A DNA stretch of 64,000 bases from Eutreptiella sp. 'Long Island Sound 2002' (lineage: Eukaryota; Protista; Euglenida). The stretch covers positions 55,118,001 to 55,182,000 of the forward strand of contig OZ038378.1 in the NCBI GenBank assembly GCA_964036045.1, written 5' to 3'. This document shows, in pieces, positions 389-59,799 of the stretch; within the stretch, counting starts at the first letter, position 1; each line of letters starts with the position of its first letter. The position numbers and the translations under genes were made by a program. The notes under the pieces are model-generated. The model saw only the letters and a program-made list of their open reading frames with translations. It had not been told where the DNA came from and did no database searches.

Positions 389-1132
389 ACCGAGGAGGTG
401 AAGGCGGGCCCGCCTGCACAGTTGGATTTCTCCGACGTACCCAAGGCTGTTGTGGAGGGCGAACCACAGCCGTTTGAGGTCCGTGTGTTGGACGACGCCG
501 GGAATCTGGTGACCGATGGTTTGCCGAAGGTGACGCTGCAACTGGCATCCGGCAAAGGGAAGCTCGGAGGCACTCTGGAGGCCATTGCCGAGAACGGCGT
601 GGCACGGTTCCCGGAGGTCACATACAACGGGGTGGACCCATTCACGGTGAAGGCAGTGTCCAAGGGTCTTCCGTCCAATACCGTGGCAGACCCGATTCCT
701 GTGGTCACCCCTCAAGGCCAGCCTGCGAGCGTCGAGTCAGCACAAGCGCTCGACACAATGGCGCGTGCACGCGACACAATGGCGCTGCTCAAACCGACAG
801 GCCCAGCTGCCAGCGCGGCAATGAAGCTGGAGGCCACTCCCCCGGCGTCTGGCATCGAGGCCGGCAAGCCCTTCACGGTCAAGGTGGCGTACAAGGACAA
901 GGACGGCGGGCTGGCCCCAGGGGCCGACCAGAAGGTCAGCGCCAAATTCGTTGCAGCGGACGGCACCGAAGTGCCGCTTTCAGGGCGCACCACCGTGTCT
1001 CCGTTGGACGGGGTCGCCACGTTCAAGGACCTGCAGCTCCCAAAGGGCGTGTCGCTGGTGGGTGGCAAGCTGCTGCTCACGGCGCCTGGGCTCGTGGGCT
1101 CTGCTATTAATGTCACTGAAGACGGATGTGAG
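389..1132 (+). CDS. Exon 1 in window (B domain + variant A domain)
   Basis: ccccag|ACC GAG GAG GTG ... TEEVKAGPPAQLDF...EDGCE|gtagat; 744 nt. An alternative in-frame donor at 1093 is less favoured. Confidence 0.75.
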
Positions 1133-4100
1133 GTAGATTCCACTGCCCTTTGTATTCATCGGCACACACCACTGCCTGCATACCCTCCCTGCCGCCCTCG
1201 GTCCAGTGTTAGCCATTTTCATCATCAGCCAGCAGTAGCCTCAGCCTTGGCGTGGGGAGAGGTCTCCCTTCTGCCGCGCCAGTGTGAACTGGAGGGATGG
1301 GGGACCTGGAAAACAGGCTTGAAAGGCCAGCCAAACATTATTTTCTCTGTTGACATTGTTTCACAGGAGATTTTTTTTGGAAGAAAATGGGCCCGAACCA
1401 GATTTGCCTCAACATTGTGTCAAATCGCTTTTTTGAATATTTTTTAGAAATCCTGCTTTTGGTGGGCCCAGCCTGTGCTATTCCAGGGGACGAGGTCCGG
1501 GAAACAGGTGCAAGGGCCCTCGTTCCGCGGAGTGACAAGGGACCGTGGGCCCTTACCGTCACCTTTACCCTCAGCCTCACCCACCCTGACAATGCCCATT
1601 GTATGCAGCTGCCCTTCAGCTGGGAAGCGACGCTGCTGGTGGACATTTTGAGAGGGATTCTGTTGGAAGGGCGACGGTTCATTGAGGGGCGCACGCCATC
1701 TGTGCGGTGGCCAGAGCTGCAGCAGGAGTGGTTTTCCCAAGAGCTTCTGGAGCAGGGCCAGGAGTTCTGGCAGTGCCATCTCTCAGCTGCTGCCAGGGGC
1801 AGAGAGGCTCACAGCGGCGTACCCTGACCTGCAACTGGGCAGTCACTGTGGGCCAGTTCACAGACAGTGCAAGTTGGGCAGCGCTGCCCTTACCTTCTTC
1901 ACAGTCATGGGCACTGGTGCCCTGTCATTTGACAGCCCCCCCCAACAACAACTACAACCCTCCCCTTTAACCCAGAGGCCAAACGCCTGAAAGGGTGCAT
2001 ACCGCTGATGTTTATCACATGGCGATCCGGAAACCCATGGCCCTGTGTTCTGTTTCCCAAGTCTGTGGTGGTGACCACCCTCCAAAACTGGTGGAAACTT
2101 CGTGTGAAGCATGTTGGCACCTCATGGAAGATGCCAAGTTGCAGCAGCAGCTGTGAGCAGACCGGCAGCTGCCCCATTCTCTCCTATCAAAAATCTGTTT
2201 CCCACCGTCCGTGGACAAGGAATGTAGGCATTTTCCTCCTGAAACCCCAAACAGCTGCGTACACCCGGCAGTACGAGCACACTAACTGAGCCTTGCACGC
2301 CTTCCCCAGACCGAGGAGGTGAAGGCGGGCCCGCCTGCACAGTTGGATTTCTCCGACGTACCCAAGGCTGTTGTGGAGGGCGAACCACAGCCGTTTGAGG
2401 TCCGTGTGTTGGACGACGCCGGGAATCTGGTGACCGATGGTTCGCCGAAGGTGACGCTGCAACTGGCATCCGGCAAAGGGAAGCTCGGAGGCACTCTGGA
2501 GGCCATTGCCGAGAACGGCGTGGCACGGTTCCCGGAGGTCACATACAACGGGGTGGACCCATTCACGGTGAAGGCAGTGTCCAAGGGTCTGCCGTCCAAT
2601 ACCGTGGCAGACCCGATTCCTGTGGTCACCCCTCAAGGCCAGCCTGCGAGCGTCGAGTCAGCACAAGCGCTCGACACAATGGCGCGTGCACGCGACACAA
2701 TGGCGCTGCTCAAACCGACAGGCCCAGCTGCCAGCGCGGCAATGAAGCTGGAGGCCACTCCCCCGGCGTCTGGCATCGAGGCCGGCAAGCCCTTCACGGT
2801 CAAGGTGGCGTACAAGGACAAGGACGGCGGGCTGGCCCCAGGGGCCGACCAGAAGGTCAGCGCCAAATTCGTTGCAGCGGACGGCACCGAAGTGCCGCTT
2901 TCAGGGCGCACCACCGTGTCTCCGTTGGACGGGGTCGCCACGTTCAAGGACCTGCAGCTCCCAAAGGGCGTGTCGCTGGTGGGTGGCAAGCTGCTGCTCA
3001 CGGCGCCTGGGCTCGTGGGCTCTGCTATTAATGTCACTGAAGACGGATGTGAGGTAGATTCCACTGCCCTTTGTATTCATCGGCACACACCACTGCCTGC
3101 ATACCCTCCCTGCCGCCCTCGGTCCAGTGTTAGCCATTTTCATCATCAGCCAGCAGTAGCCTCAGCCTTGGCGTGGGGAGAGGTCTCCCTTCTGCCGCGC
3201 CAGTGTGAACTGGAGGGATGGGGGACCTGGAAAACAGGCTTGAAAGGCCAGCCAAACATTATTTTCTCTGTTGACATTGTTTCACAGGAGATTTTTTTTG
3301 GAAGAAAATGGGCCCGAACCAGATTTGCCTCAACATTGTGTCAAATCGCTTTTTTGAATATTTTTTAGAAATCCTGCTTTTGGTGGGCCCAGCCTGTGCT
3401 ATTCCAGGGGACGAGGTCCGGGAAACAGGTGCAAGGGCCCTCGTTCCGCGGAGTGACAAGGGACCGTGGGCCCTTACCGTCACCTTTACCCTCAGCCTCA
3501 CCCACCCTGACAATGCCCATTGTATGCAGCTGCCCTTCAGCTGGGAAGCGACGCTGCTGGTGGACATTTTGAGAGGGATTCTGTTGGAAGGGCGACGGTT
3601 CATTGAGGGGCGCACGCCATCTGTGCGGTGGCCAGAGCTGCAGCAGGAGTGGTTTTCCCAAGAGCTTCTGGAGCAGGGCCAGGAGTTCTGGCAGTGCCAT
3701 CTCTCAGCTGCTGCCAGGGGCAGAGAGGCTCACAGCGGCGTACCCTGACCTGCAACTGGGCAGCCACTGTGGGACAGTTCACAGACAGTGCAAGTTGGGC
3801 AGCGCTGCCCTTACCTTCTTCACAGTCATGGGCACTCGTGCCCTCTCTATGTGTGTCCAATCGTAAGGAGATCCATTTCTGGATGATTTTGCAATTTTTT
3901 CAGTGAATTAGCCAATTGCTGACTGCATACCGAACGATATTTCATGTCCCTCGGCCCTCCCCCTAGGGATGTATTGCAACGGGTGAGGGGGTAGCCCCCC
4001 CAATGCACCCCTCCCCCATGACTCTGCCCCCTCCTCCTCTTCTAACGTGTAATTGAACACGGTAAACAGTGCGTTCACAAGTTTGGCCCCCCTTTTATCG

Positions 4101-7100
4101 GGGACACCCTGCACTTTGCACTTTGCACCGCCCTCCCCCTCCCCCCTCACCTGCTTTCGACTCTTCCAAGACAATACAGCTGTTAAACAATGCAACATAT
4201 GTTAAACACAGGGCGGCGGTAGATAGCGTCACTTCAAAAAGTTTTTCGGTCCGTGGCACGCCAAAAGTGTTCTTGTTGACATGAATGATGAACCACTTCT
4301 GGCCTGGCAAGTAGTCCCCCCTCACCCTCCCTCACCCTCATATCTTTTGCCATGGCTCGCCCTCACCCTGACCACAGACCGAGGAGGTGAAGGCGGGCCC
4401 GCCTGCGCAGTTGGATTTCTCCGACGTACCCAAGGCTGTTGTGGAGGGCGAACCACAGCCGTTTGAGGTCCGTGTGTTGGACGACGCCGGGAATCTGGTG
4501 ACCGATGGTTCGCCGAAGGTGACGCTGCAACTGGCATCCGGCAAAGGGAAGCTCGGAGGCACTCTGGAGGCCATTGCCGAGAACGGCGTGGCACGGTTCC
4601 CGGAGGTCACATACAACGGGGTGGACCCATTCACGGTGAAGGCAGTGTCCAAGGGTCTGCCGTCCAATACCGTGGCAGACCCGATTCCTGTGGTCACCCC
4701 TCAAGGCCAGCCTGCGAGCGTCGAGTCAGCACAAGCGCTCTCCAAGGCGCTCCAGAAGGCCGTGCCGCCCGGAAGCCCTGGGCCCGGGCAGTGGGGCGGG
4801 CCTGCAGCATACCCTGGCTGGTTGGAGGCTCTCACGGGCCCAGCGGGCGCTGCAACCAAGGTTGTGGTGCAGCCTCTCAAGGACCCGGCCCAGCCCGGCA
4901 AGCCTTTCGCAGTGGACGTGGAGCTGTGCGACCCCGCTGGCAACATTGTGCAGGGGGCGGCGACCCCGATCACGCTCCGGGCTGTGAAGAAGGACGGCAG
5001 CCCGGTTCCGCTTAACGGGACTTCTACAATGGTCCTCTCCTCCCCAGGCATCCTGCATCTAACCCCCCCCCCCCCTTGTTCCTTTCATCCGCCATGTCAG
5101 TTTTCCACTTCCGTAAGCCTCATTGTCGCCTTGTTCTATTGTGTCCCTCCGCCTCCCTGCCACCTGGTTATCTCGGCATCAACGCACCCAAGCGATTCGT
5201 TGATGCGTCCCTCTTCCTACTTCTGACAAATCTCTCTGTTGCGACTAGTCGCCCACCGCCCAGTGCCTGCCTCCTGCATGAGCACCATGAAGGCTGGCGG
5301 TAGATTTTGTAGAAGCGAGCCCGATTAGGGAGGGAGGGACGGACAGAGAGATTCCTTTGGTGGGTGTTGCAGCCCTTCACACAGGTTTGTGTGCACTGCA
5401 TGCCCCCCTGGGTTGCATGCTCTGGCGCTCTCTGCCTGTGTTGGGCATGTTGGGGACACGCAGTCTGTGTGCCTCCATGCGGAGGGTTAAGTGCCTCCAT
5501 ATGGAGGGTTTTGCACCGCAATGTGGAGCAGATTGTGCTCAGGGCTTTGTGAGGGCTTTGTGCCTCCTTGGGGAGGACTTGGGGCCTCCACTCGGAGGAG
5601 AATGTGCCTGGCCTCAGTGGTGTGTAGCCGCAGTCCTGTGTTGTGGCCAGCAGCATTTTTAGCAAGCACGTGCAGCACCCCAGTATAGTGAGACCCTGGC
5701 CTTGGTACCAATTGAGGGGGTATCGGGGTTGATGTTGCTTTTTTTGTTTGTTGTTTTGCACGTGCTGGTGCTTGTCGTGCTGCTGTACAAAACTCGTTGC
5801 TCTCTTCAAGGGTGTTTTATGTGAGCGCACGTTGCTCTGGCATTCCTACCTCGGGCAAGCACACTACCAGGCAGGTGGGGGGCATGGGTTGGATGATGCC
5901 CTCCCTCTAGCAATGCACAGGCTCAGCACTCGAATCCCAGAACCCCTTGCACCTAGTTAGCCACTATGTGCTCTCATGTTGCTCCCTTCAGCGGGGTTTG
6001 GGACCGCTGCCCAGGAGGGTGCTCTCTGTTGTACGGCGTGGGCGGTTTGAGGTAAAGACCCAGGCAGCTCTGTCCACTCGGTTGCGAGGAGGGTGCGCCG
6101 CCTGTGGTGGATATGGGCTCAGGTAGCGGCATCTGTTGTCGCCTAACTCAGGTGGCGACATAATCGTCTCACCCATGAGGCTCAGCATACACACCAGGGC
6201 ACCCCCCTCCCCCCCTCCCTCTCTTCCTCCCTCCCTCCGTCCATCCTCCAAGATGCCGTTCGATGGCACCGCCACTTTCCGAGACGTGACCCTCCCGGAC
6301 GATGTCGACCCTGACGACATACTGCTGACTGCAACGGCGCCAGGACTCGCGCCCTCGCCTGGCATCCCTGCGTCTGGCGGAGAGGCCGTCGACTACTGCC
6401 CGTTAAAGCTGGCACCTACACAGCTTGCGATCTCCAGCGCTCCGGCTGGGCTCGTCGCCGCTGGGGCACCGATGCGGTACGAGGTGTGTGTGATTCGCGG
6501 ACCAATGCGTTTGACGCATTAGCCAAATACCCCCTAATCATCTGTGCACAATACAACAAGCGGCCGGTTGTAGTGATTGTCTTTCGGCCTGCCCCCACCC
6601 AAACCGCGCACTACCCTCCCTTTCTGCCCCCTTTCTGCAACGCGCCAGATGTGAGGATAAATTGATGCTAGCCGAGCCTCTGCCACCACGACGGGCAACA
6701 TATGGTGATCGTCAGCGTTTGGCAGTCCACCAACAACGGCCGGCCGGCACCCGCCATCGCCAGCATTTGGCCCGTGATCACCAGTTAATGTTGTAATTCG
6801 TGTAATTTTTTTTTTGCGGGAAATGCGTGCAACAAAAAAAATTGTCTAGTCGAGTATTTTTTTTTTGTGGTAAGTCGTGTAAGCCTGTCACACGCATTGC
6901 CGCAAAAAAAAATGCACGACTTGACGATTTTTTTTGTTGCATGTGTTTCCCGCAAAAAAAAAATTACACGACATGACGATTTCTTTCTACGCGCGTTTAC
7001 CGCAAAAATACAAAAATTACACGACCTTCCCACAAAGAAACAATTGCCAATTTTACTGAAAATGCATGCCTGTAGGCAATGTGCCCACCTGTGGGCCACT

Positions 7101-10100
7101 TCTGATTTTTTCCCTGCGCAGGGGTGACGTAGGATTTCTGCCCTCTTCTGCAGGGGGGGGGGGAAATTGAGGCCCGCAATTTTTCGCAATTTTCCGCAAT
7201 TTCGCAATTTTTCGCAATTTTCCGCAATTTTTCGCAATTTTCCGCAATTTTCCGCAATTTTTCCGCAATTTTTCACACTTCCCGATTTTCTGACCGCCTC
7301 CCCACGCTGGTGCAGAACAATGAGAATTTTTTTTTTTTACTATTCCATACACTCTCAAATGTTGCAAAGTCACCAGAACCTGGTATAGCTCAATTGGTAG
7401 TACCACTGCACTGTAGTTCCAGGGTCCTGGGTTCAAACCCAGTTGGGCACAATATGGTTACCTTCGCTTTTTTGGTCTTTTTACCTTCGCTTTTTTGGTC
7501 TTTTTCATGCCTGCATGTTCGCATGTTTGCATGTGCATGTCCGATGTGCCAGAGATTGCAGAGCAATGGAGCCTATACATCCGTTGCAAAGTTGTTGATA
7601 TAAATGGGCCAACTGCTTTGCAGGAATGGTGGCAATCTCGTGCCCCTTCACCGTTCCAAGAGAGGGTGCTGTTCTTGATTACGCAGCCCACTTCTGGTGG
7701 TGATGTGGAACGCTTTTTCTCACAGTGTAGGACAGTTTCAAAGCGGCAGCACAAATTGGATGACAACATCCGCCGCCTTCGGTTCATGCTGCAATTCCAC
7801 GGTGATATTGAGGGGCGCCTCCTGTAAGTGTACTGCCCATAGACTATTTGTTTCAGTGAAATTCTGAGAATTCTGAGCCACCTGTCCAGAGTTGTTGCAC
7901 CTTGAGGGTTCAGGAGGGCCGCTTACGACATCGCAATTTTCCCGCCATTTTCCGCAATTTTCCGCAATTTTCCGCAATTTTTCCGCAATTTTTCCGCAAT
8001 TTTTCGCAATTGGATTCGACCCCCCCAGACCGCAATTTCCCCCCCCCCCCCCTGCTCTTCTGGCCACTGAGAAGGCAAGGCTGAGGTAGCCACTTCTGAT
8101 TTTGTCCCCCTTTCTTTGGGGATCCCCGAAATGCAGGGGTGACTAAGCATTTCCACCCTCTTTTGGGCCCCCAAAAAAGCAGGGGTGAGGCACCCACTTC
8201 TGATTCTGTCCCCCGTTGCAGGGCGGGCCCTCAGGAACCAGGTTTTTTTTTTGCTAAGGTTAGCTTAGGGACTCGCAAGCCACGCTTTGTTGCGTGGCCC
8301 CTTGAGTTGGGGTTAGGGACTCTCAATCCACGCTTTGTTGCGTGGCCCTTTGAGTTGGGGTTAGGGACTCTCAATCCACGCTTTGTTGCGTGGCCCTTTG
8401 AGTTCGGGTTAGGGACTCTCAATCCACGCTTTGTTGCGTGGCCCCTTGAGTTGGGGTTAGGGATTCTCAATCCACGCTTTGTTGCGTGGCCCCTTGAGTT
8501 CGGGTTAGGGACTCGCAATCCACAACTCGTTGCGTGGCCCTTTGAGTTGAGGTGAGGGACTCACAATCCACGCTTTGTTGCGTGGCCCCTCGAGTTGGGG
8601 TGACAGACTCTCAATCCACGCTTTGTTGCGTGGCCCCTTGAGTTGGGGTTAGGGACTCGCAATCCACGCTTCGTGGCATGGCCCCTTGAGTTGGGGTTAG
8701 GGACTCTCGATCCACGCTTTGTTGCGTGGGCCCTTGACTTGGGGTTAGAGACTTGCAATCCACGCTTCATTGCCTGGCCCCTTGAGTTGGAGTTAGGGAC
8801 TCGTAATCCACGCTTTCTTGCATGGCCCATTGAGTTGGGGTTAGGGATTCTCAATCCACCCTTTGTTGCATGGCCCATTGAGTTGGGGTTAGGGATTCTC
8901 AATCCACGCTTTGTTGCGTGGGCCCTTGACTTGGGGTTAGGGACTTGCAATCCACGCTTTTTTGCGTGGCCCCTTGAGTTGGGGTTGGGGATTCACAATC
9001 CACGCTTTCTTGTGTGGCCCCTTGAGTTGGGGTTAGGGACTCGTAATCCACGCTTCATTGCCGGGCCCCTTGAGTTGGGGTTAGGGACTCGTAATCCACG
9101 CTTTGTTGCGTGGCCCCTTGAGTTGTGGTTAGGGACTCGCAATCCACGCTTTCTTGCATGGCCCATTGAGTTGGGGTTAGGGATTCTCAATCCACGCTTT
9201 GTTGCGTGGGCCCTTGACTTGGGGTTAGGGACTTGCAATCCACGCTTTTTTGCGTGGCCCCTTGAGTTGGGGTTGGGGATTCACAATCCACGCTTTCTTG
9301 TGTGGCCCCTTGAGTTGGGGTTAGGGACTCGTAATCCACGCTTTGTTGCGTGGCCCCTTGAGTTGTGGTTAGGGACTCGCAATCCACGCTTTCTTGCGTG
9401 GCCCCTTGAGTTGGGGTTAGGGATTCTCAATCCACGTTTTATTGCGTGGGCCCTTGACTTGGGGCTAGGGACTTGCAATCCACGCTTCGTTGTATGGCCC
9501 CTTGAGTTGAGATTAGGGACTCGCAATCCACGCTTTGTTGTGTGTCCCCTTGAGTTGGGATTAGGGGTTCGCAATCCACGCTTTGTTGTGTGGCCCCTTG
9601 AGTTGGGGTTTAGGGACTCGCAATCCACGCTTTGTTGTGTGGCCCCTTGAGTTGTGGTTAGGGACTCTCAATCCACTCTTTGTTGCGTGGACCCTTTAAT
9701 TGTTGTTAGGGACTCTCAATCCACGCTTTGTTGTGTGGCCCCTTGAGTTGGGGTTAGGGACCCACAATCCACGTTTCGTTGCGTGGCCCCTTGAGTTGGG
9801 GCTAGGGATTCTCAATCCACGCTTTTTTTGAGTGGCCCCTTGAGCTGGGGTTAGGGGTTCGCAATCCACGCTTTGTTGCCTGGCCCCTTGAGTTGGAGTT
9901 AGGGGTTCGCAATCCACATGTTGTTGCGTTGCCCCTTGAGTTGGGGTTAGGAACTCTCAATCCACGCTTTATTACGTGGCCCCTTGAGTTGGGGTTAGGG
10001 ACTCGCAATCCACGCTTTGTTGCGTGGCTCTTTCACTTGGGGTTAGGGACTCTCAATCCACGCAATGTTGTGTGGCCCCTTGAGTTGGGGTTAGCAACTC

Positions 10101-13100
10101 TCAATCCGAGCTTTTTTTGCGTGGCCCCTTGAGCAGAGATTAGGGACTCTCAATCCACGCTTTTTTGCGTGGCCCCTTGAATTGGGGTTTAGGGACTTGC
10201 AATCCACGCTTTGTTGTGTGGCCCCTTGAGTTGGGGTTAGGGGTTCACAATCCATGCTTTGTTGTGTGGCCCCTCGAGTTGTGGTTAGGGATTCTCAATC
10301 CACTCTTTGTTGCGTGGTCCCTTTAGTTGTTGTCCGGGACTCTCAATCCACGCTTGGTTGTGTGGCCCCTTGAGTTGGGGTTAGGGACTCACAATCCACG
10401 CTTGGTTGTGTGGCCCCTTGAGTGGAGATTAGGGACTCGCAATCCACGCTTTGTTGTGTGGCCCCTCGAATCGGGGTTAGGGGTTCGCAATCCACGCTTT
10501 GTTGTGTGGGCCTTTCAGTTGGGGTTAGGGACTCGCAATCCACGCTTTGTTGCGTGGCCCCTTGAGTTGGGGTTAGTGATTGGCAATCCACGCTTTATTA
10601 CGCGGCCCCTTGAGTTGGGGTTAGGGGTTCGCAACCCACGCTTTGTTGCGTGGCCCTTTCGCTTGGAGTTAGGGACTCTCAATCCACATGTTGATGCGTG
10701 GCCCCTTGAGTTGAGGTTAGGAACTCTCAAGCCACGCTTTATTACGTGGCCCCTTGAGTTGGGGTTAGGGACTCGCATTCCACGCTTTGTTGCGTGGCCC
10801 CTTGAGTTGGGGTTAGGGACTCTCAATCCACGCTTTGTTGTGTGGCCCCTTTGAGTTGGGGTTAGGGACTCACAATCCACGCTTTCGTTGCGCGGCCCCT
10901 TGAGTTCGGGTTAGGGACTCTCAATCCACGCTATGTTGTGTGGCCCCTTGAGTTGGGGTTAGGGGTTCTCAATCCACGCTTTGTTGTGTGGCCCCTCGAG
11001 TTGGGGTTAGGGACTCACAACGCACGTTTCGTTGTGTGGCCCCTTGAGTTGTGGTTAGGGACCGTCAATCCACGCTATGTTGCGTGGCCTCTTGAGTTGG
11101 GGTTAGGGGTTCGCAATCCACGCTTTGTTGCGTGGGCGCTTGAATTGGGGTTAGGGACTCTCAATCTACACTTTTTTTGAGTCGCCCCTTGAGTTGAGAT
11201 TAGGGACTCGCAATCCACGCTTTTTCGCGTGGCCCCTTGAGTTGGGGTTGGGGACTCGCAATCCAAGCTTTGTTGTGTGGCCCTTTCAGTTGGGGTTACG
11301 GACTCTCAATCCACATGTTGATGCGTGGCCCCTTGAGTTGGGGTTAGGAACTCTCAATCCACGCTTTATTACGTGGCCCCTTGAGTTGGGGTTAGGGACT
11401 TGCAATCCACGCTTTTTTGCGTGGCCCCTTCAGTTGGGGTTAGGGGTTCCCAATCCACGCTTTGTTGTGTGGCCCCTTTGAGTTGGGGTTAGGAACTCTC
11501 AATGCACGCTTTATTACGTGGCCCCTTGAGTTGGGGCTAGGGACTCGCAATCCACGCTTTGTTGCCTGGCCCCTCGAGTTGGGGCTAGGGGTTCGCAATC
11601 CACGCTTTGTTGCGTGGCCTCTTGAGTTGGGGTTAGGGACTCTCAATCCACGCTTTGTTGCGTGGCCGCTTCAGTTGGGGTTAGGGGTTCACAATCCACG
11701 CTTTATTGTGTGGCCCTTTCAGTTGGGGTTACGGTGTCTTAATCGACATGTTGATGCGTCGGCCCTTGAGTTGGGGTTAGGAACTCTCAATCCACGCTTT
11801 TTACGTGGCCCCTTGAGTTGGGGTTAGGGAATCACAATCCACGCTTTGTTGCGCTGCCCGTTGAGTTGGGGTTAAGGACTCGCAATCCACGCTTTGTTGC
11901 GTGGGCCCTTGAGTTGGGGTTGGGGAATTTCAATCCATGCCTTGTTGTGTGTTACCTTGAGTTGGGGTTAGGGACTCTCTATCCACGCTTTGTTGCGTGG
12001 CCCCTTGAGTTGGGGTTAGGGACTCGCCATCCACGCTTTGTTGCATGGGCCCGCAAGTTGGGGTTGGGGACTTTCAATCCACACTCTTTTGCGTGGCCCC
12101 TTGAGTTGGGGTTAGGGACTCTCAATCCACGCTTTGTTGTGTGGCCCCTCGAGTTGGGGTTAGGGACTCTCTATCCACGCTTTGTTGCGTGGCCCCTTGA
12201 CTTGGGGTCAGGGACTCACAATCCACACTTTGTTGCATGGGCCCTTGAGTAGGGGTTTAGGGACTCGCAATCCATGCTTTTTTGCATGGCCCCTCGAGTT
12301 GGGGTTAGGGACTCTCTATCCACGCTTTGTTGCGTGGCCCCTTGAGTTGGGGTTAGGGACTCTCAATCCACGCTTTGTTGCGTGGCGCCTTGAGTTGGGG
12401 TTAGTGACTCACAATCCACGCTTTGTTGTGTGGCCCATTGAGTTGGGGTTAGGGACTCTCAATCCACACTTTGTTGCGTGGTCTTTTGAGTTCTGGTTAG
12501 GGACTCACCATCCACGCTTTGTTGCGTGGCCCCTTGAGTTGGGGTTAGGGACTCGCAATCCACACTTTGTTGCGTGGGCTCTTGAGTTGGGGTTGGGGAC
12601 TCGCAATCCACACTTTGTTGCGTGGGCTCTTGAGTTGGGGTTGGGGACTCTCAATCCACATGTTGATGCGTGGCCCCTTGAGTTGAGGTTAGGGACCCAC
12701 AATGCATGCTTTGTTGCGTGGCCAATAGAATTGGGGTTAGAGATTCTCAACCCACGCTTTCTTGCGTGGCCCCTTGAGTTGGGATTAGGGACTCACAAAC
12801 CACACTTTGTTGTGTGGCCCCTTGAGTTGGGGTTAGGGTCTCACAATCCACGCTTTGTAGCGTGGCCCCTTGAGTTGGGGTTTAGGGACTCGCAATCCAC
12901 GCTTTGTTGCGTGGCCCCTTGAGTTGGGGTTAGGGAATTACAATCCACGCTTTGTTGTCTGGCCCTTTGAGTTGGGGTTAGGGACCCACAATTCACACTT
13001 TGTTGCGTGGCCCCTTGAGTTGGGGTTAGGGACTCGCCATCCACGATTTGTTGTGTGGCCCCTTGAGTTGGGGTTCGGGAATCACAATCCACGCTTTGTT

Positions 13101-52100: not shown

Positions 52101-55100
52101 TGTGACAGTTGGTTCGCGCACTGGTTTGATTTTTCAAGAATGGACTGTGTGCACTGTTTGCCCTAAGCCACAAGGGAAAAGTATTTTCGGTAAGTGAGAG
52201 TGGGACAGTTGTGCTTCTACTCACGAGTGCTGCTTCTGCCCCTGAGCGTCCGTCGCACGCGGCGCCGGCCATGCTCCACACAAATTCGTTCCCAAGACAG
52301 TGAAGTTTGGAGGGTGCTCACGAACACATCTGATATGGGAGATGTAACACGGGGCCTTGGATTCCCGGAGGGGGGGGGGGTGCACAGCTATTCGTCCGCT
52401 ACTACTAACCGTCCGGGCAAAGCGAAGTGCACAAGGAAGGGTCTGTTCCACCTTGCTGTGATCCTGCAGATTCAATCATATCCCTGTGCATGTTTGGGCC
52501 CACAACATATAGTCAGTTGCGTGTAATTATTTCCATTTGCGATTGGTTCCGCCAGGCCAGTCCGGGGGGGGGGGGGGGATGTTGGTTCCACTGAGGCAGT
52601 CTGGGGCAACAGACAGGTACCGAATCGAGCCTTGGCTGAAAGGGACCTCACTTGATCGTTCTTATCTAGATACTGGCAAATGCACAGGAGTCAGGACATG
52701 GTCCAGATTCCACTGTGTGACCCCAACAGCGGTAGCGGATACGCAGCCGTGATTCTATGGTGTTGCCTTCATACTGCAGGGGACACATCCACACACCCAC
52801 ACCCACATCCACACCCACACCCCCACGCCTCACCGACACGCACACGCACACCCACACCCACACCCACACCCACACCTGCACCCTCCGCCCCCAGCCCTCG
52901 GTCGTGCTTCTGCAGGGCAATTGCAAGGTCTCTGCATCCGCGGGTGTGGCAAAGTTTTATGGGATGGCTGTCATGGAGGCGCCGGAGGGGCTGTTGCTTA
53001 CCGCCACGTCCCCTGGGCTGGCTCCTTCGCCAGGCGTTCCCTTGACCGGTGGAGATGCCGTGGATTTCTGCCCCATGAAGCTTGTTGCCTCTGCGTTGCA
53101 TATCGGGGCTCCTCTCACTGGAAATGAGAAGGTGGGGCAGCCGATCGTATTTGAGGTTGCTTCCCATCCATATCACATTGTGGGCCCTGGCCATCTGCCA
53201 CTGTGTGTCCCTGACACGTGCGCCTCTGCTGCACTGTGTGCTTCCCAATGTCTGTGCCCCATCACCCACTTCACTGCCTTGCATGCTGCTCCCTCTGTGT
53301 GCGTAATCAGCGCACCACATTAGCCCGCCCCCCCCCCTCCTGCTATAACAACCCCATGTCAGAACAACACCAAGTGTTGTTTGAGTTAAATTTTGGAATC
53401 TTTTGTGTTGCTCTCGTATACTGCCCATCGCGTGTGCCTCGCTACGGGCCATCGAATTCTGTGGTACTGCACTGTGTAGTGTGTGATGCACTGCAATCCG
53501 CAGCAGGCAACACGTGTGGCCACCACGGTGCACGGTCCTGCCGACAGCGTGTGCCACATCGCTGAATGATGTCCTGCCCAAGACGCTGACCTCAGCAGTG
53601 CGCCATGTCCCGCGAGACATATGTGCCGCACTGCAGTGCGTCCAACACAGCACGATGTGTTGCCGGACACATGTCCACAAACATGTGTGCCGTACACACT
53701 GCACAGCATGTGTGCTCCATCACCGCATTGCGTGCTGCCTGCCCCATCACTGAGTACGTCACCCCCAACGGTGGCTCCACCTGTTTTGTAACCGCCACCT
53801 TCTGCTCCTTCAGTGCTTTCTCAGCGGTGGCCAAACAGGTTTACTAGCGGTTGCTGCACGACCACATGGTCTTCCTCTCCTTCAGGTGCCGGCCTGGGAA
53901 GGGGTTTTTCCCAATGTGTGTCCCCTTGCACTGCACACTGCACGACATGTGTGCACCACTGCTGTATCACGTAGTGGCCCCAACTGCGTGCGTCAGGTCA
54001 AGATTGTTGATGACGAGGGCAACCTCGTGTCTGACGCCGAACCAGTCATCATGCTGCAGCTCGCCAGAGGCAAGGGCAATCTGGGAGGCACGCTCAAGGC
54101 CACCGCTGTGAACGGCGTGGCACGCTTCGAGGACGTGACATATGACCGGCGCGACCCGTTCACCGTGACCGCAGTCTCGGACGGGCTCAAGCCTTCCACA
54201 TTCCCTGAGGCAATCACCCTCAAGCCCAAGGACGATTTTGTGGTGACCGACGCCGGGTCGGTCGCGGACGAGGTGCCTTCTGTGCCCGCCCCTCCCCCTT
54301 CTGTGCCCTCGTATCTTTCCGCTGGCATACGTGCGGCCTCCACACCCTGCGTGCTCGGTCCCAGCAACGGAGCCCCCCGCATGCCCACCGAGTGGGGGCG
54401 TCCTTGTACGCGACCCCCATCCCTCCCTGCCATCGCTCCAACCCCCTTTGAAAAATTGTGCCCCCGCCCCGACTAGTTACGCAACTAAAGGCCGATGGTG
54501 CCGCAGGAAGAAACGGTTGCTGAACACCATTGATTTGGAACATGTTTGTAGTTCAATGGTCCTTTTTTTTGTGTCCCCTGGTTGCTTCTTGGTCAATGTG
54601 CAGAAGGTTGGTGATAGTCGCTGCGTGTTGTGTCCTCTTCAAGGCTGCCAATCCCAGTGGCCCCCCTCATCCTCGCCCCCCTCCCCCCCCTTGTGGTAGG
54701 TGTCTGTGTTAAACTGGGTAAGTCTACCAAAGGTTCCACCTACGCCTGCGCTTAGCTCACCTGAATTAGGCTTGACCCCCCCTTCCCCTCCTTCAAGAAC
54801 TGTAGTTCCTGGGGAAGGGAAGTTCTGCGCATAGGCCTGTCCTGACGCTTCTTGTATGTATAACCCTCTGTCAGCCCTTTTTTGTTTTCAAATACTTCTG
54901 TGCTGCAAATGCGTCAATACTGTGGCTTGTTTAGTGTGTTGCTGGGAAGGACTGGCTGTGCAGAATCCCGCCCCTGGATGCACAGGCAAGGGCCTATGGA
55001 GGCAGGTGTCAGGCTCGAGACACGGCGGCAGGAGGACCAAGGCAGGGAATTGCATGAAGGGGGGAAGTAGGCCTCCCCACCCTCCCAACACCGTCACCCT

Positions 55101-57670
55101 CTACATCCAACTGGCCGTGATCTCCACCCAAACCACTGTCAACAGCTTTTGTAACTGCCAATACCAACAGCTATTTGGGGGGGGGGGGGGGATGGTTGCG
55201 GCAGGGTCTACAGTCCATCGCAGCTCCGGGGAGGGGTCTGGTGTGCTTTGGGGGGGGGGGGGGGCGGAAAGACCCAATTATTCCCATTGGCATTGGTTCA
55301 GAACAGGTTTTTGCAGAAAAATGGGGCTGAACCAGCGAGGGTATATCATACCCGGAGCCGCTTGACGGTCATACGGTTTTTCGGTCCTTTGACAGCTCCT
55401 GGCAACTATTTGGGAGAAGCGGCGGCGAGGAAGCTGACCACGAAGACAGGCGGACCGGTTCTGTGCCCGTGGTTTACTCCGAGGAGGGGGGCCCTTTGAG
55501 CCTGTTTCCCAGACCTGCTGTCCAAAAGAGCTGGGCAACCATAAGCATTGCAAGCATGTGGGACGTCTGAAATTGCTGAAAAAAGTGATTTTACAAAAAA
55601 TGTGGGCCAAAGCCCCCCCTCTGGCTTGTGGTTGTACCGGGTGCACCTACCGGCTTCGCCCCCATGGAATAACCCCCCTACAAGTGCCCTGCACGACCCC
55701 AGGATGCGGAAGAGGAGGAGGAGGCGGAGCCGATGGTGGTGTCCGTCGTGCCGCTCGAGTCGGCCGTGCAGCGCGGCAAGCCCTTCGCTGTCGATGTGGA
55801 GTTGCGCGACAAGGAGGGCAACCTTCTGACCGATGCCACACCAACGGTGACGGTAAAGGCGGTGAAGCCCGATGGCACCCTCGTAGAGTTGTTTGGCAAG
55901 GTGTCTTAGCTCCGCCTCCTTGCGGGGCCCCTTCCTCCAGCACCCCGCACCCCCCGTGACTCATCCCCTGTGTGGTCCCACGTCCTGTGTATCTCTGCTG
56001 GAACAATGCGATGGCATTTGGAGGGGAAAGCGACCCCAAACAGCAAGTATCCGCGAATATTGATGGTGACGGAGCACCTGCACGAAGTGCGTGGGGTGCA
56101 CTATGCGCGAGTGTTTCGGCATTACTGTGCGTGCTGTGCCCAGGGCTCCCTTTAACAAGTCAGCACCACTGAGGGTGGGGGGGGGTCCCAAACCACCCCC
56201 CCCTCCTCTTGAGTGATTGGGCCAAATTGCTCTCCGGGCCTTCGGACAATCAAATTTTCTCTGGCGCTTTCGGCGCCAATTAGTTTAGGCTCAAAAATTT
56301 CTTCGGCGCGTTTGGCGCCTCCAAAAGTTCAGCACCGCTGGGGGGACGGGGGCTGGACCCCCTTCCCCCCTTTTAAAGGAGCCCTGGCTGTACCCACACA
56401 ATTGCCCCACTGCCGTGTCACGCTCAGCAGGACCGAGGCCCCTTGTTCAAGGGTCAATGAGACATGTTTACAATTTACTGCGCGAGCGCCGGAAACTTCC
56501 GACAGGCAGCAGCCCACGATGTGCACAGGACACTCCATGAAATCCCTCCTGTCAAGTGAGCCTGTGGAGCCCGGAAGCAAAAGTTCACAGGAACTACTGA
56601 TGACAATCCTGCTGCCGCCGCTGCCGCTGCCGCTGCCGAGAGAAGGGCGGTCAACTGCCCCCAGAGTGTTATGTCAGGCTGTGGAGGGGCGACACCCGCG
56701 CCCAGCTCCGGGACGTTGCTGCCCGCAGTGGACCACCAGCCGCCTGTCACCAGCCGCCGGCGGTTAGTTCGGGGTTAGCGCGCCCACTGCCGTGCGTTGA
56801 CCGTTAACCGCCGTCGGTTAACTGCCATCGTCAAGCGTTCTTCAGGGGACGAAAATTTTACAAAAAAGGAAGCAAAACTACACTGAACCCCCCCACCCAC
56901 CCCCAATGCACTGTCCTCAGAAGCCTTTCTTTTGGAACAGCCCGGGTCCCGACGAGCATGTTCCCTCCTGTGCCCCTGCCCCTGACGAGGAACGCCAATC
57001 AAACGCGGTACGTTGCAGCCAACAGCATCACATTGGGACACAGAGGACACGATCTGGGCCTGTGGGCGGGGTGGGGGGTGGGCAAGGGGGTTGGTGTGTC
57101 GGGTACTAACAGCAGACTACTGTCAGTTCCAGTTCAACTGAGCCAAAGGCTGCCCCGCGTCCGTATCCCGTGTCGTCCCCCGCAGCCTCTCTGCCTCTGC
57201 CCCATCCGCAGACGAAGGCGAAGGTGGAGGATGGGCGGGCGCATTTCGAGGGCCTGACGCTGCAGACGTTGCTCTTGGACGATGTGTTCCTCGTCGCCAC
57301 GGGTTCGGGCCTCGAATCCGGCCGTGGGGTCCCGGTGCTTGGCGGGCCGCCCCCGCTGCTGCCGGAGGAGCGCGTCCCCGCACAGCTGGAGATCAAGGCG
57401 CCCAGAGAAATCGAGCTCGGCAGCAAAATGCAAGTCGAAGTCAAGGTACGGGGCTCTTTGCGTGCCAGCCAGCCTCCCGGGGTTGCCATACCCAATTTGC
57501 CAAGCCTGGGGCACTGAGGGGGGAGGGGATTCTACAAGGGGGACATTCTGATGGACAATTTCTGTACGAGTATTTTGTAATGTGTTCGGCCCTTTTAGGG
57601 ATTTGTGCTGCATTTTTTCACAAGTGCTCCGCCACAGGTCCAAACACACCTACATACACGCTCCTGCGCG

Positions 57671-57713
<43 letters not shown>

Positions 57714-59594
57714 GCCCTAAGACCCATACAGGCTTCACTCTATAATAGGGTGCCCCCTTCCCCCCCAACACACATGCATACATACACAGGACAAGCCATG
57801 CAGCCAATGCAGAATCAAACCAGTGCGGACACCCGGGTGCCAACCGGCACACTTGCTGACCCCCCCCCACACGCCCCCCAAAGAATACCGTGCGAATTCT
57901 AAAGATTTGCGAAAATATTTAATTCCTGGCACAAGGCATTGTTGTCCGCAAAAAAAAAAAAACAACGCAAAAAATGATTAATTATTGGCTTCATGCCTTA
58001 CGCAAAAATGGGTTCGCAAAAAAAAAATCGCAAAAATGAAATAATTTTTGCCCCTGCCCCCCTTTTTGCAAGAATGCCAGAATCGCGGGAGAGTTTGCCC
58101 AACTGCTTGTTGTCCCCCTCTTCCGTGTCTCATGCCCGTTCTGCACCTTGCTTTGCTCTCAGAGAATGATGCATCCGGGATTGTCACAAGGTTTAAAATA
58201 GTGGAATGTGGCAGTTGATGTGCCCGAAAGCAGATAAAGGGCTAGCTATTATGGACAAGTTTGGAACTGGTTTGTTGAAAAACTGGTAGACCTGAACCAT
58301 GCTTGTTGGTGCTTATCTGTGCTGTGGACTGCAAAGCCAGAGTCCAAGGTATGCACGGTTTCTTGCAGTAGCAACAAAAGGAATCAACCCCAATCCCGAA
58401 AACGCAAAAAAACCGCCAAAAAAATTAATTTTTGGTCCAACACCCTACGCAAAAATGCGTTCCGCAAAAAAAAATTGCAAATTTTTTTTTGCCCATTTTT
58501 GCCCATTTTGGATGCTGCCGCAAAATTTTTGCTTATTATTAATTCAAAACACCCAACGCAAAAATTAGGATTCCGCGAAACTTTAGAATTCGCACGGTAT
58601 GCCGTAGGTCCTTGCTCTGAAGTGTGTTTTCATGAGTGCGTTATTCACACACCAATTTCCATTGTCCCTGGTTCCCACTTTTTTTGGGGGTTGTCTGCCT
58701 TTGGCTGTTTGCAATCCATTAGCTCTTGGTAGGTGGCTGTGGGTAAGCCTACCGAAGGTTACATTTACACTTTCGCTGAGCTCATCTGAATTGATGGCTG
58801 GCCTATATCGAATGCGTATCAGATAGATCTACATGTCGTAGATTGAACACGCATGGACAGGTACACTGACGGAGGTGTGCACAGTGTGCACAGACTGCAC
58901 ACAGGTAAACGGGTATGTGCACCGTGTCTGTGTGATCTCATATCTGTTAGATTGCGCATGAGGCCAGCTTGACCTTAATCCCCTCCACTCCCCCCTAAAG
59001 GGGCCTTTGGCCCATTCCCCGCCTCCGGAGTCGTGCCTCAGGCCGAAGCCCCTGCCCTTGCCCCTGCCCCCATCCTGCCATGGGCCCTTCCTGCCATCCT
59101 GCCGGCCCTCCGCGCAGCCCCTTTTCACTCCCCCGCGCCCCCAGGTTCTGGACGAAAACGGCAACCTCTGCGTCGCTGCGGACTGCCCCGTCCAACTGGA
59201 GATCGCGGGTGGCAACGGGGATCTCACCGGCACGATCTCGGCCACGGCCAAGGATGGCGTCGCGACGTTTCCGGAGGTCCAGTACACTGGGAACCAGCCG
59301 TTCGGGCTCATGGCGCACTCCGCCAACTTGTCGTCGGGGGCGTCGGAGCACCTCATCGAAGTTCGCCCAACGTCGCGGCTGAACCTCGACGCTCTGAAGG
59401 ATGAGGACAAGGAGGACGCCAAGGACTCCCCGGGCTACACCACTGACAACCCGGATACAGTGCGCATCGAGACGGAGCTCAGCACGCCGCTCTCGCCCAT
59501 CCTCTCCAAGCTCTCCCCCGACGAGCTGGATGGCTTCCGCCGCAAGTTCAAGGCCATTGACATCGATGGCGATGGCTTCATCATGCGACACGAG
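389..59594 (+). CDS. Partial multi-exon gene: giant repeat protein of alternating Ig-like beta-sandwich domains (8 B + 7 A) followed by an EF-hand; join(389-1132,2310-3053,4378-5031,6253-6483,20699-21859,23823-24116,26290-26532,31499-31783,35104-35520,52916-53155,53997-54272,55703-55900,57212-57445,59145-59594)
   Basis: All exons are AG/GT-bounded and multiples of 3. Most junctions restore the repeat consensus: NGTSTM|MPFDG, RYE|VRVLDD, FEVK|VVDD, TIPE|DINPED, LGTVQ|VEAENG, VNLT|GNCKV, VFE|VKIVDD, LFGK|TKAKVEDG, VEVK|VLDENG. No start or stop codon lies in the window. The Ig-like fold is inferred from alternating hydrophobic strands and the D-x-x-G-N turn. Junctions that fall in linkers cannot be verified by homology. 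Confidence 0.85.
2310..3053 (+). CDS. Exon 2, tandem duplicate of exon 1
   Basis: Offset 1,921 bp from exon 1 with the same splice sites; one nonsynonymous difference seen (L to S in DGL/SPK). Confidence 0.75.
4378..5031 (+). CDS. Exon 3 (B domain + start of A domain)
   Basis: cacag|ACCGAGGAG ... NGTSTM|gtcctc; 654 nt. Confidence 0.85.
6253..6483 (+). CDS. Exon 4
   Basis: tccaag|ATGCCG MPFDGTATF...APMRYE|gtgtgt; 231 nt. Confidence 0.9.
7379..7449 (+). pseudogene. Degenerate tRNA-Tyr(GUA)-like sequence inside the hAT element
   Basis: A-box TAGCTCAATTGGTAG; anticodon arm CTGCA-CTGTAGT-TCCAG (one mismatch); B-box GGTTCAAACCC with CTGGG/CCCAG stem; acceptor stem does not pair. Confidence 0.6.
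7540..7827 (+). pseudogene. hAT transposase C-terminal dimerisation-domain remnant
   Basis: ALQEWWQSRAPSP...LITQPTSGGDVERFFS matches the WW...P...TSA.vER.FS motif. Confidence 0.75.
8258..18952 (+). repeat. Intronic satellite array, 48-bp unit GGCCCCTTGAGTTGGGGTTAGGGACTCGCAATCCACGCTTTGTTGCGT, about 220 units
   Basis: Direct reading; one TTAGGG per unit; diverged units with local higher-order repeats (814 bp, 627 bp). Confidence 0.97.
19242..19968. mobile_element. TA-flanked non-autonomous TIR element (Tc1/mariner-like by TSD)
   Basis: TA|CCGAGCAAACTT ... AAGTTTGCACGG|TA; AT-rich subterminal CGCAAAAA repeats; short internal ORF remnant. Confidence 0.7.
20699..21859 (+). CDS. Exon 5 (B domain, Pro/Ser and Arg/Gly/Ser linker, A domain, start of B)
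   Basis: ttgtag|GTCAGG VRVLDDDGNLV...MLFEVK|gtccac; 1,161 nt. Confidence 0.88.
23823..24116 (+). CDS. Exon 6
   Basis: gttcag|GTAGTG VVDDDGNLVTDGKP...LGNAA|gtatgc; 294 nt. Confidence 0.88.
26290..26532 (+). CDS. Exon 7 (acceptor may be 26284, 26287 or 26290)
   Basis: cagcagcag|AAC NCDALPTDVVLLP...FEDVTIPE|gtctcc. Confidence 0.85.
27200..27615 (+). pseudogene. Second hAT transposase 3' remnant
   Basis: A frame with stops reads YEDPIEFWQQHRGALGVLVVALLTMLATSANLERSFSLA...VNGNVEKQL*; not in the ORF track. Confidence 0.75.
28400..29795 (+). pseudogene. Decayed ORF(s) of unknown family, probably TE- or virus-derived
   Basis: Protein-like collinear segments 28470-28985, 28979-29432 and 29433-29795, broken by frameshifts and stops; Lys/Glu-rich run; no motif recognised. 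Confidence 0.4.
31499..31783 (+). CDS. Exon 8
   Basis: tttcag|GAC DINPEDVLLTATAPGL...LLGTVQ|gtgctt; 285 nt. Confidence 0.9.
32222..33013. mobile_element. About 790-bp TIR element inserted in a short tandem repeat
   Basis: About 35-bp imperfect TIR TCTTAGGCGGC(T/C)GAAAGT..TACAC.TTTGTACCA; removing it with a 3-bp ATA TSD restores the flanking unit CTGATATGTGGCTCA. Confidence 0.8.
33477..33973. mobile_element. MITE, TA-flanked, with internal 31-bp tandem repeat
   Basis: TA|CCAGGAGGGGC...GCCCCTCCTGG|TA; about 6 copies of CAGCAACCATCCAGAGCCCACCAGGAAATAA at 33648-33830. Confidence 0.85.
34350..34919. mobile_element. Second, diverged copy of the same MITE family
   Basis: TA|CCAGGGGTGGAATTATTT...AAATTATTCCGCCCCCGG|TA; same 31-bp repeats and shared internal blocks. 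Confidence 0.75.
35104..35520 (+). CDS. Exon 9
   Basis: tctcag|GTG VEAENGVALF...TPVNLT|gtatgg; 417 nt. Confidence 0.9.
38100..38770 (+). mobile_element. Fragment of a second LINE family (region downstream of the RT core)
   Basis: QLGVEVP...LVTPLALHGAAVAPL...LGLDTMVL*AVPG...PHHRVSP...GPLGRALH..GWW resembles post-RT segments of protist LINEs. Recognition is by memory of family patterns only. Confidence 0.5.
39000..47690 (+). mobile_element. Decayed non-LTR retrotransposon: long upstream ORF region, APE endonuclease, partly deleted RT, RNase H
   Basis: APE motifs LLTLNV, VVLLQET, GVTILVR, VFNVY, MGGDF, LDFFL, SDHYPV (43840-44490); RT YRDD at 44635 followed by YVRIVG; RNase H motifs FVTDGS, AMEV, IDSRS, DAVDREAK (45640-46080); many stops and frameshifts. 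Both ends are approximate. Confidence 0.85.
47695..48240 (-). mobile_element. Non-LTR RT N-terminal fragment (motifs 0-3)
   Basis: Minus strand reads ALGLDSW..L..L.DWLADLLQEVERWG*WPLRLDEGYTALILK...NTRPLTVLSMIYGLWA...SINYVKCLNLIPHAIG..LELGMDP. Confidence 0.8.
48840..50980 (-). pseudogene. Decayed Cys/His-rich ORF of unknown family
   Basis: ORF-track pieces 50655-50981, 49753-49956, 49474-49734 and 48861-49097 lie collinearly on the minus strand and read as protein between isolated stops. Confidence 0.35.
51805..51902 (+). repeat. (GTCACT)n hexamer microsatellite
   Basis: Direct reading. Confidence 0.95.
52787..52877 (+). repeat. (CACACC)n-like microsatellite just upstream of the exon 10 acceptor
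   Basis: Direct reading. Confidence 0.9.
52916..53155 (+). CDS. Exon 10
   Basis: ctgcag|GGC GNCKVSASAGVAKF...PIVFE|gttgct; 240 nt. Confidence 0.88.
53997..54272 (+). CDS. Exon 11
   Basis: cgtcag|GTC VKIVDDEGNLV...SVADE|gtgcct; 276 nt. Confidence 0.88.
55703..55900 (+). CDS. Exon 12 (absent from the ORF track)
   Basis: ccccag|GAT DAEEEEEAEPMVVSVVPLESAVQRGKPFAVDVELRDKEGNLLTDATPTVTVKAVKPDGTLVELFGK|gtgtct; 198 nt; clear A-domain match. Confidence 0.88.
56141..56386. mobile_element. hAT-type MITE (246 bp)
   Basis: TIR CAGGGCTCC(C)TTTAA; 8-bp TSD GCTGTGCC/GCTGTACC (one mismatch). Confidence 0.8.
57212..57445 (+). CDS. Exon 13
   Basis: ccgcag|ACG TKAKVEDGRAHF...MQVEVK|gtacgg; 234 nt. Confidence 0.88.
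57671..57711 (+). repeat. (CA)n microsatellite
   Basis: Direct reading. Confidence 0.95.
57888..58597. mobile_element. TA-flanked non-autonomous TIR element related to 19242-19968
   Basis: Perfect 17-bp TIR CCGTGCGAATTCTAAAG with TA on both sides; 710 bp. Confidence 0.85.
59145..59594 (+). CDS. Exon 14 (last B domain, acidic linker, EF-hand loop DIDGDGFIMRHE)
   Basis: ccccag|GTT VLDENGNL...FRRKFKAIDIDGDGFIMRHE|gtatct; 450 nt. The loop has D1, D3, D5, G6, I8 and E12. Confidence 0.88.
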
Positions 59595-59799
59595 GTATCT
59601 CTGCCAAACCCCCCTGCCAGGGGGTGGAAGCAGCACCTGTGAGCAGAGGGACAACTGTCCCACTCTAAGAGTGAAGTGTCACGCGAGTGTAAAACAAAAA
59701 ATTTAAAAAATATCAATTTTTTTTCAAGTGCTACGCGAGTGATTCGCGCTGACACTCGAAAGAAAAATATGCATAAATATTTTTTTTGAGTGTCAGTGC

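Follow-up and report, generated by a model that had tools for sequence, protein, structure and literature searches.

Immunoglobulin-like domains of the Big_1/intimin type are otherwise found mainly in bacterial surface proteins. With the bacterial Big_1 giants of the invasin/intimin kind the euglenid gene described here has in common the domain fold, a detectable sequence homology and the arrangement of its modules in long tandem arrays. In contrast to these giants, however, it is interrupted by at least 17 spliceosomal introns, is built from paired, alternating domain subtypes, contains disordered linkers and ends in a C-terminal EF-hand pair. The stretch of 64,000 nucleotides in which it was found (referred to as the window) corresponds to C1:55118001-55182000 of a 2.28-Gb assembly and consists of GC-rich eukaryotic DNA. 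Including flanks of 60 kb read on each side of the window, 184 kb were scanned altogether. A first-pass annotation of the window had proposed that fourteen exons spread over 59 kb are spliced into one open frame of more than 2,000 amino acids, in which two types of Ig-like modules, A and B, strictly alternate and finally lead into an EF-hand.

Iterated profile searches of the six-frame translation, seeded with either module, reveal about 20 pieces of one repeated domain between positions 398 and 59354. All of them reside on the + strand and they follow the claimed order, which reads B A' B A' B A B A B A B A B A B and leads to an EF-hand loop at ~59560-59594. For each of the fourteen window exons (389-59594, + strand), the borders of which were set by script, an AG behind a pyrimidine tract marks the acceptor and a GT the donor. 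All window introns are in phase 0, every exon length is divisible by three, and the exons sum up to 2,057 amino acids, so that the single open frame as well as its predicted size were borne out. Where a module is split, its halves match across the intron. Furthermore, AG/GT borders in phase 0 are present at exons U2 and U3 and at the 5' border of exon E15, all outside the window, exactly where the domain alignment demands them. Introns also recur at fixed points of the module, four times just behind the "FEV" strand in B modules and three times behind the "L.G" turn in A modules. Such a pattern of exons and modules is far beyond chance. The recognised exons, together with the large repeat elements between them, are listed below in window coordinates, negative values denoting positions upstream of the window.

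-21578 to -21150, + strand, outside the window (upstream): U1, a divergent A-like module and the start of a B module
-20219 to -19584, + strand, outside the window (upstream): U2, the rest of the B module begun in U1 and an A' module
-1532 to -789, + strand, outside the window (upstream): U3, a third copy of the E1-type exon
389-1132, + strand: E1, a B module, a helix-containing linker and an A' module (248 aa), based on AG/GT borders, phase 0 and AlphaFold2
2310-3053, + strand: E2, a tandem copy of E1 with 2 differences in 744 nt, based on borders and copy comparison
4378-5031, + strand: E3, a B module (its first ~360 nt identical to E2 save 1 nt), a different linker and the N-terminal half of a canonical A module
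6253-6483, + strand: E4, the C-terminal half of A, the conserved A-to-B junction with Cys-Pro and the first strands of B
8265-18952: 48-bp satellite array of 222 copies in the intron between E4 and E5
20699-21859, + strand: E5, the rest of B, a 174-aa linker rich in Pro, Ser, Gly and Arg, a full A module, the junction and the start of the next B
23823-24116, + strand: E6, the rest of B and the start of a linker
26290-26532, + strand: E7, the N-terminal three-quarters of an A module
31499-31783, + strand: E8, the end of A, the junction and the N-terminal two-thirds of B
35104-35520, + strand: E9, the end of B, an acidic 46-aa linker and the N-terminal half of A
40300-47500, + strand: LINE-type retroelement with endonuclease/RT-like ORFs, in gene orientation within the intron between E9 and E10, not part of the product
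52916-53155, + strand: E10, the C-terminal half of A, the junction and the start of B
53997-54272, + strand: E11, the rest of B and the start of a linker
55703-55900, + strand: E12, the end of an acidic linker and the N-terminal half of A
57212-57445, + strand: E13, the C-terminal half of a divergent A, a degenerate junction and the start of B
59145-59594, + strand: E14, the last B module, a 50-aa acidic linker, an entering helix and the first EF-hand loop
60280-64000, continuing to ~+111,000 (L010-L014): the 48-bp satellite again, equally oriented, over ~51 kb, making up most of the intron between E14 and E15
112989-113171 (L014:8989-9171): E15, the second EF-hand exon, beginning with a helix behind a phase-0 acceptor

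Clearly, the gene is larger than first claimed and extends past both ends of the window, with three exons located upstream and the second half of the EF-hand unit located downstream. As a minimum it spans about 135 kb (134.7 kb) and comprises at least 18 exons, at least 17 introns and at least 2,721 amino acids, i.e. 20 modules plus the EF-hand pair. U1 begins at an acceptor and has no in-frame start codon ahead of its domain; relaxed profile scans over 38 kb upstream of this exon did not reveal any further modules. A separate MORN-repeat gene (window -32,610 to -30,250, + strand; L006:7390-7539 and L006:9502-9750; Pfam MORN 39 bits) is present upstream, whose two recognisable exons presumably resemble MORN5, which is a cilium-associated protein. 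Since this separate gene sits upstream, the 5' end is placed in the interval of ~8 kb between it and the first module exon, within which neither codon-usage ranking nor module-profile scans identified a coding exon.

The EF-hand into which the first-pass annotation had let its reading frame lead proved to be real, and an exon further downstream completes it. At its phase-0 end, E14 stops straight after the twelfth residue (Glu) of the first loop without providing an exiting helix, and reading through its donor yields a Pro-rich, stop-terminated tail. Apart from this loop, a single EF-hand loop, that of E15, was found on the two strands of the 184 kb scanned. Both loops, each 12 residues in length, fit the DxDxDG...E Ca2+-binding consensus. 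When the exons are scored singly against the Pfam family EF-hand_7 (PF13499), E14 aligns with positions 5-21 and E15 with positions 27-64, the latter with 31.8 bits at a cut-off of 30. As these positions are complementary, E14 and E15 are considered the two halves of one EF-hand domain. The intron which separates them measures 53.4 kb and is unusual in consisting of satellite nearly throughout, although the assembly could have inflated its length. Transcription has to cross ~51 kb of tandem satellite to unite the two halves of one small domain and, in addition, the 10.7-kb array between E4 and E5.

A few further observations concern the repetitive DNA of the locus. Both strands of the 48-bp satellite remain open over long distances, these frames being surely non-coding. 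About 50 bp at 59615-59667, starting 20 nt past the E14 donor, match more than 1,000 candidate genome sites with 88-96% identity and may represent the end of a short interspersed repeat. A 31-bp tandem repeat of 6.3 copies (33633-33829) is located in the intron between E8 and E9, a (CA)n microsatellite (~52800-52860) directly precedes the E10 acceptor, and a second LINE-like element is present at ~window +117,700 to +121,500 (L015). As expected of a Euglena genome, the assembly contains more than 5,400 occurrences of a 24-mer from the Euglena spliced leader, compared to 0 in a reversed control.

Searched with the E15 peptide, the whole genome yielded one other site, C7:93781026, which belongs to a paralog on the + strand (C7:93756887-93781154; L047, L019). 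Over its two exons, the EF-hand tail of this paralog shares 68-71% identity with E15, and it contains one extra intron. Its acceptor is located at the same codon as that of E15, before the "VDR.YR" helix, and the basic helix following loop 2 is the part best conserved between both paralogs. Two weak B-like modules are present 17 and 24 kb upstream of the tail on the same strand. This paralog is diverged and, judged from the modules and the tail that were read, apparently much shorter. Because it keeps the order of B-type module and EF-hand as well as the same intron, we consider the join across the satellite to be real.

Single-exon copies are scattered elsewhere in the genome. The region C7:6370961-6481853 (L016, L017, L049) was rejected as a site of complete paralogs, as it harbours lone copies of E3 and E4 with no other modules nearby. 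Taken over this region and C21:11029948 (L044), the stray copies derive from E3, E4 and U1, occur in both orientations and look like dispersed fragments of the Ig-repeat gene rather than genes; one E3-like copy is located ~4 kb from an LTR-type retroelement ORF. At C25:17694654-17694923 (L043), ~145 amino acids of basic, Pro-rich sequence precede, in the same frame, a diverged version of the first (A0-like) module. This piece possibly represents the 5' portion of a third gene of the family and may give a hint at the missing N-terminus.

Within the array, U3, E1 and E2 together with their introns are 99-100% identical and constitute exon-plus-intron units of 1,921 bp (window 389-4377 together with L009:8468-10000). 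The intron copies are closer to each other than the exon copies: between U3 and E1, the introns differ at 1 position in 1,177 nt and the exons at 10 in 744, half of the latter being non-synonymous. In a fourth unit, that of E3, the similarity to E2 is limited to the initial ~360 nt of the exon. About 500 of the 2,057 amino acids thus originate from a very recent triplication, the copy number of which is assembly-dependent. The array grew, and still grows, via tandem duplication of phase-0 exon-plus-intron units, and the gene represents a clean case of such ongoing growth. As all introns are in phase 0, these duplications, and likewise any skipping of exons, preserve the reading frame. Among the old modules dN amounts to 0.26-0.66 while dS is saturated, and the resulting dN/dS of ~0.2-0.5 is as expected if these modules have evolved under purifying selection.

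Near-identity of this kind is also met in collapsed or expanded assemblies, and along with the partial stray single-exon copies at C7 6.37-6.48 Mb and on C21 it would fit a locus which is not one working gene. Such a locus would consist of at least two transcription units, for instance an Ig-repeat gene and a separate small EF-hand gene beyond the satellite, or of a decaying or partly mis-assembled array with artefactual copies and satellite lengths. We regard this as quite unlikely, since every exon is open, the splice sites are intact and of one phase, the EF-hand halves complement each other with neither forming a domain alone, and the same split of the EF-hand is kept in the paralog on C7. 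In addition, a cluster of ORF fragments from a contig-level ENA assembly, which may not be an independent assembly, has three members on one contig. Hence, we consider it very probable that the locus harbours one real, intron-rich nuclear gene of the architecture described.

Since a profile query with A as well as one with B retrieves the respective other type, both are homologous, old subtypes of a single Ig-like domain of ~95 amino acids. The first-pass annotation had compared the modules with bacterial surface Ig-like repeats of the Big type and with Ig-like segments of fibrocystin-like and SMCHD1 proteins, and had recommended fold prediction on single modules. With 17 window modules supplied as alignment, AlphaFold2 predicts the B module as a confident Ig-like beta-sandwich (pLDDT 93.3, pTM 0.82), and E1 as two beta-sandwiches with a helix and a disordered segment between them. 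Comparison of the B model by VIA-align, covering 90-100 of its 104 residues for GH2, intimin and invasin, gives the highest score for C-terminal Ig domains of GH2 enzymes (Z 11.1), followed by intimin D00-D0 (10.9), intimin D0-D1 (10.6), invasin (9.7), complement MG domains (9-9.7) and filamin repeats (8.6-8.9), while Foldseek yields a TM score of 0.77. In the ESM Atlas, the model matches with a TM score of 0.93 bacterial clusters, mostly of Gemmatimonadota, labelled Big_1 or Ig_SMCHD1_6th (PF26198); a feature search of the Atlas leads to identical labels and, in addition, to a pair of eukaryotic clusters, of which one is from Euglenozoa. The comparison with Big-type repeats is thus supported, and that with SMCHD1 holds in so far as the automatic labels of these bacterial clusters name it, whereas no link to fibrocystin was seen.

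At the sequence level, single exons scanned against Pfam and NCBIfam give Ig-like matches below threshold only. The scores for Glyco_hydro2_C5 (PF18565; 24.3 vs 32 bits), Invasin_D3 (PF09134; 18.5 vs 33) and Big_1 (PF02369; 12.9 vs 34.9) all miss the respective gathering cut-off, so the modules form a divergent subfamily outside the curated models. A sequence search of the PDB with the module profile produced weak matches only. In a library of 1.84 billion proteins, in turn, the module profile matches 15,432 proteins at E<=1e-3, and sampled matches carry Big_1, Invasin_D3 and Glyco_hydro2_C5 above cut-off. The best single domains in this library reach 55-64 bits, compared to 85-113 bits for the gene's own modules. 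The best-scoring proteins are bacterial-looking intronless giants of 1,300-7,100 amino acids encoded on metagenome contigs, several of them with lipoprotein-type signal peptides. Taken together, the predicted fold and these matches characterise the module as a divergent member of the known Big_1-like superfamily of the invasin/intimin type.

A tree of the modules, which the first-pass annotation had suggested as a means to address a horizontal origin, was built including 80 domains from the best-scoring library proteins. It clearly separates a B clade (support 0.96) from a clade of A plus A' (0.94). No supported sister groups emerge from this tree of the gene's modules and the library domains, neither between A and B nor with the bacterial-looking domains. 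Accordingly, the A and B clades stand while a horizontal origin is neither shown nor excluded.

None of the searches made identified a close relative outside this species. The protein databases reached contain only genomic single-ORF fragments of the same species' gene, and word-based protein searches with E14, E1 and E5, confined to targets of 0.55-1.75 times the query length, returned only such fragments. A metagenome scan with E8 gave matches to the pattern but no relative, an ESM Atlas look-up of E14 gave no usable match, and nothing relevant was found in the literature on Euglena in combination with Ig-like and EF-hand domains. Among the best 150 of the 15,432 library matches none possesses a C-terminal EF-hand pair, one displaying dockerin-like loops. 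Consistent with the earlier statement that no named protein has this architecture, the combination of an array of Ig pairs, disordered linkers and an EF-hand pair seems undescribed, its absence elsewhere being weakly established by searches with such length limits.

The most conserved stretch of the entire protein is the A-to-B junction, which comprises the end of A, rich in Thr, Ala, Pro and Gly, together with a Gly-Gly and a Cys-Pro that is almost invariant. The joins from A to B are short, and variable linkers are found at the joins from B to the next A only. These linkers are mostly disordered and either Pro/Ser/Gly-rich or acidic; those contained within single exons measure 28, 44, 46, 53 and 174 amino acids (overall roughly 30-175 aa). 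The disordered linkers which had been proposed to separate the modules thus do so at the B-to-A joins, but not at the short and highly conserved A-to-B joins. Because variable linkers are confined to the former, the A-B pair has to be seen as the structural unit, and about ten such rigid units of two domains each make up the protein chain. The longest linker, that of E5, combines a repeated Pro/Val/Glu motif of the PLPPTP..VPLP type with a subsequent Arg/Gly/Ser-rich (RG-rich) stretch.

As to composition, no recognised exon contains a transmembrane-type hydrophobic stretch, Cys occurs about once per 100 residues and N-x-S/T sites are few. Since these features are accompanied by EF-hand loops of consensus type, we favour an intracellular location. 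The protein would be confined to a single compartment, most probably the cytoplasm or the cytoskeleton. Rigid A-B pairs alternating with floppy linkers would form a long extensible tether or spacer similar to titin and filamin, and Ca2+ bound by the C-terminal EF-hand pair would alter either the docking of that end to a partner or its conformation. As the best explanation of all observations we thus propose a single real gene encoding a soluble modular protein which acts as an intracellular, extensible, Ca2+-responsive tether, and we judge this somewhat better than an even bet. The function as such, i.e. tether, Ca2+ switch and cytoplasmic site, is suggested by composition and by analogy, and taken by itself the reading as tether and Ca2+ switch is possible but tentative. 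More specifically, the protein might be a Ca2+-switched elastic element confined to euglenids, situated in the cell cortex or the flagellar apparatus and coupling Ca2+ signals to the shape changes of euglenoid movement. It would then be a titin-like spring made from an Ig domain of bacterial type, a reading which we consider very unlikely to hold in such detail.

The kinship of the modules with invasin and intimin might also suggest a secreted or surface-exposed, adhesin-like stalk, located outside the cell or in the flagellar pocket or the mucilage, whose EF-hand pair would bind extracellular Ca2+ and thereby stiffen or anchor it. By sequence and structure, the domain is indeed nearest to surface proteins and giant repeat proteins of bacteria, several of which have lipoprotein-type signal peptides. 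As the first recognised exon lacks a start codon, it may moreover be preceded by a signal peptide, a membrane anchor or a targeting domain. In addition, the one conserved Cys per A-B unit could form intermolecular bonds. Yet, signal peptide, transmembrane segment and anchor are absent from the recognised exons, and the content of Cys and of glycosylation sites is very low. Beyond that, it is intracellular proteins which typically combine with canonical EF-hand pairs of the DxDxDG type or with disordered linkers that are acidic or RG-rich. An adhesin-like stalk thus appears unlikely, and the intracellular tether remains our preferred reading.

The Ig_SMCHD1_6th label of the nearest Atlas clusters and the Arg/Gly/Ser-rich stretch of the E5 linker would, in turn, be in line with a nuclear or RNA-associated scaffold, in which Ig domains of the SMCHD1 kind are combined with an RG-rich linker making contacts to nucleic acids or condensates. 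The Atlas clusters bearing this label are bacterial, however, and the RG-rich stretch occurs in one linker only. In addition, none of the exons scanned showed a GHKL ATPase, an SMC hinge or any further domain related to nucleic acids. A scaffold of this kind is therefore highly improbable.

With inverse-autotransporter adhesins such as intimin and invasin the euglenid protein shares the domain type, whereas signal peptide, LysM domain, beta-barrel and lectin-like domain were not seen in its recognised exons. Titin, twitchin and obscurin resemble it in being very long chains of Ig folds with Pro-rich extensible segments, and the E5 linker is reminiscent of PEVK in its composition. In contrast to titin, however, the euglenid modules are not of the I-set or Fn3 type, neither these domains nor a kinase being matched by any exon in Pfam scans, and homology does not reach past the general Ig fold, making this an analogy rather than a membership. 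The Ig rods of filamin match the module model (Z 8.6-8.9, as given above), and in alpha-actinin, as in the euglenid protein, the rod terminates C-terminally in an EF-hand pair. The N-terminal calponin-homology actin-binding domain of filamin and alpha-actinin was not seen in the recognised exons, ahead of which further 5' exons would lie, and the euglenid repeats are nearer to Big_1 than to filamin and are not spectrin repeats. What is common with SMCHD1 is the label of its Ig-like domain 6 (PF26198) on the nearest Atlas clusters, while ATPase and hinge were not seen in the exons scanned and the best-matching clusters are bacterial. If made as predicted, the protein would rank among the largest modular proteins proposed for a euglenid and would be a candidate for the Ca2+-dependent mechanical elements of euglenid cells. 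It would then exemplify a eukaryote which builds a long Ig chain from a domain of the Big_1/intimin type and caps it with a Ca2+ sensor.
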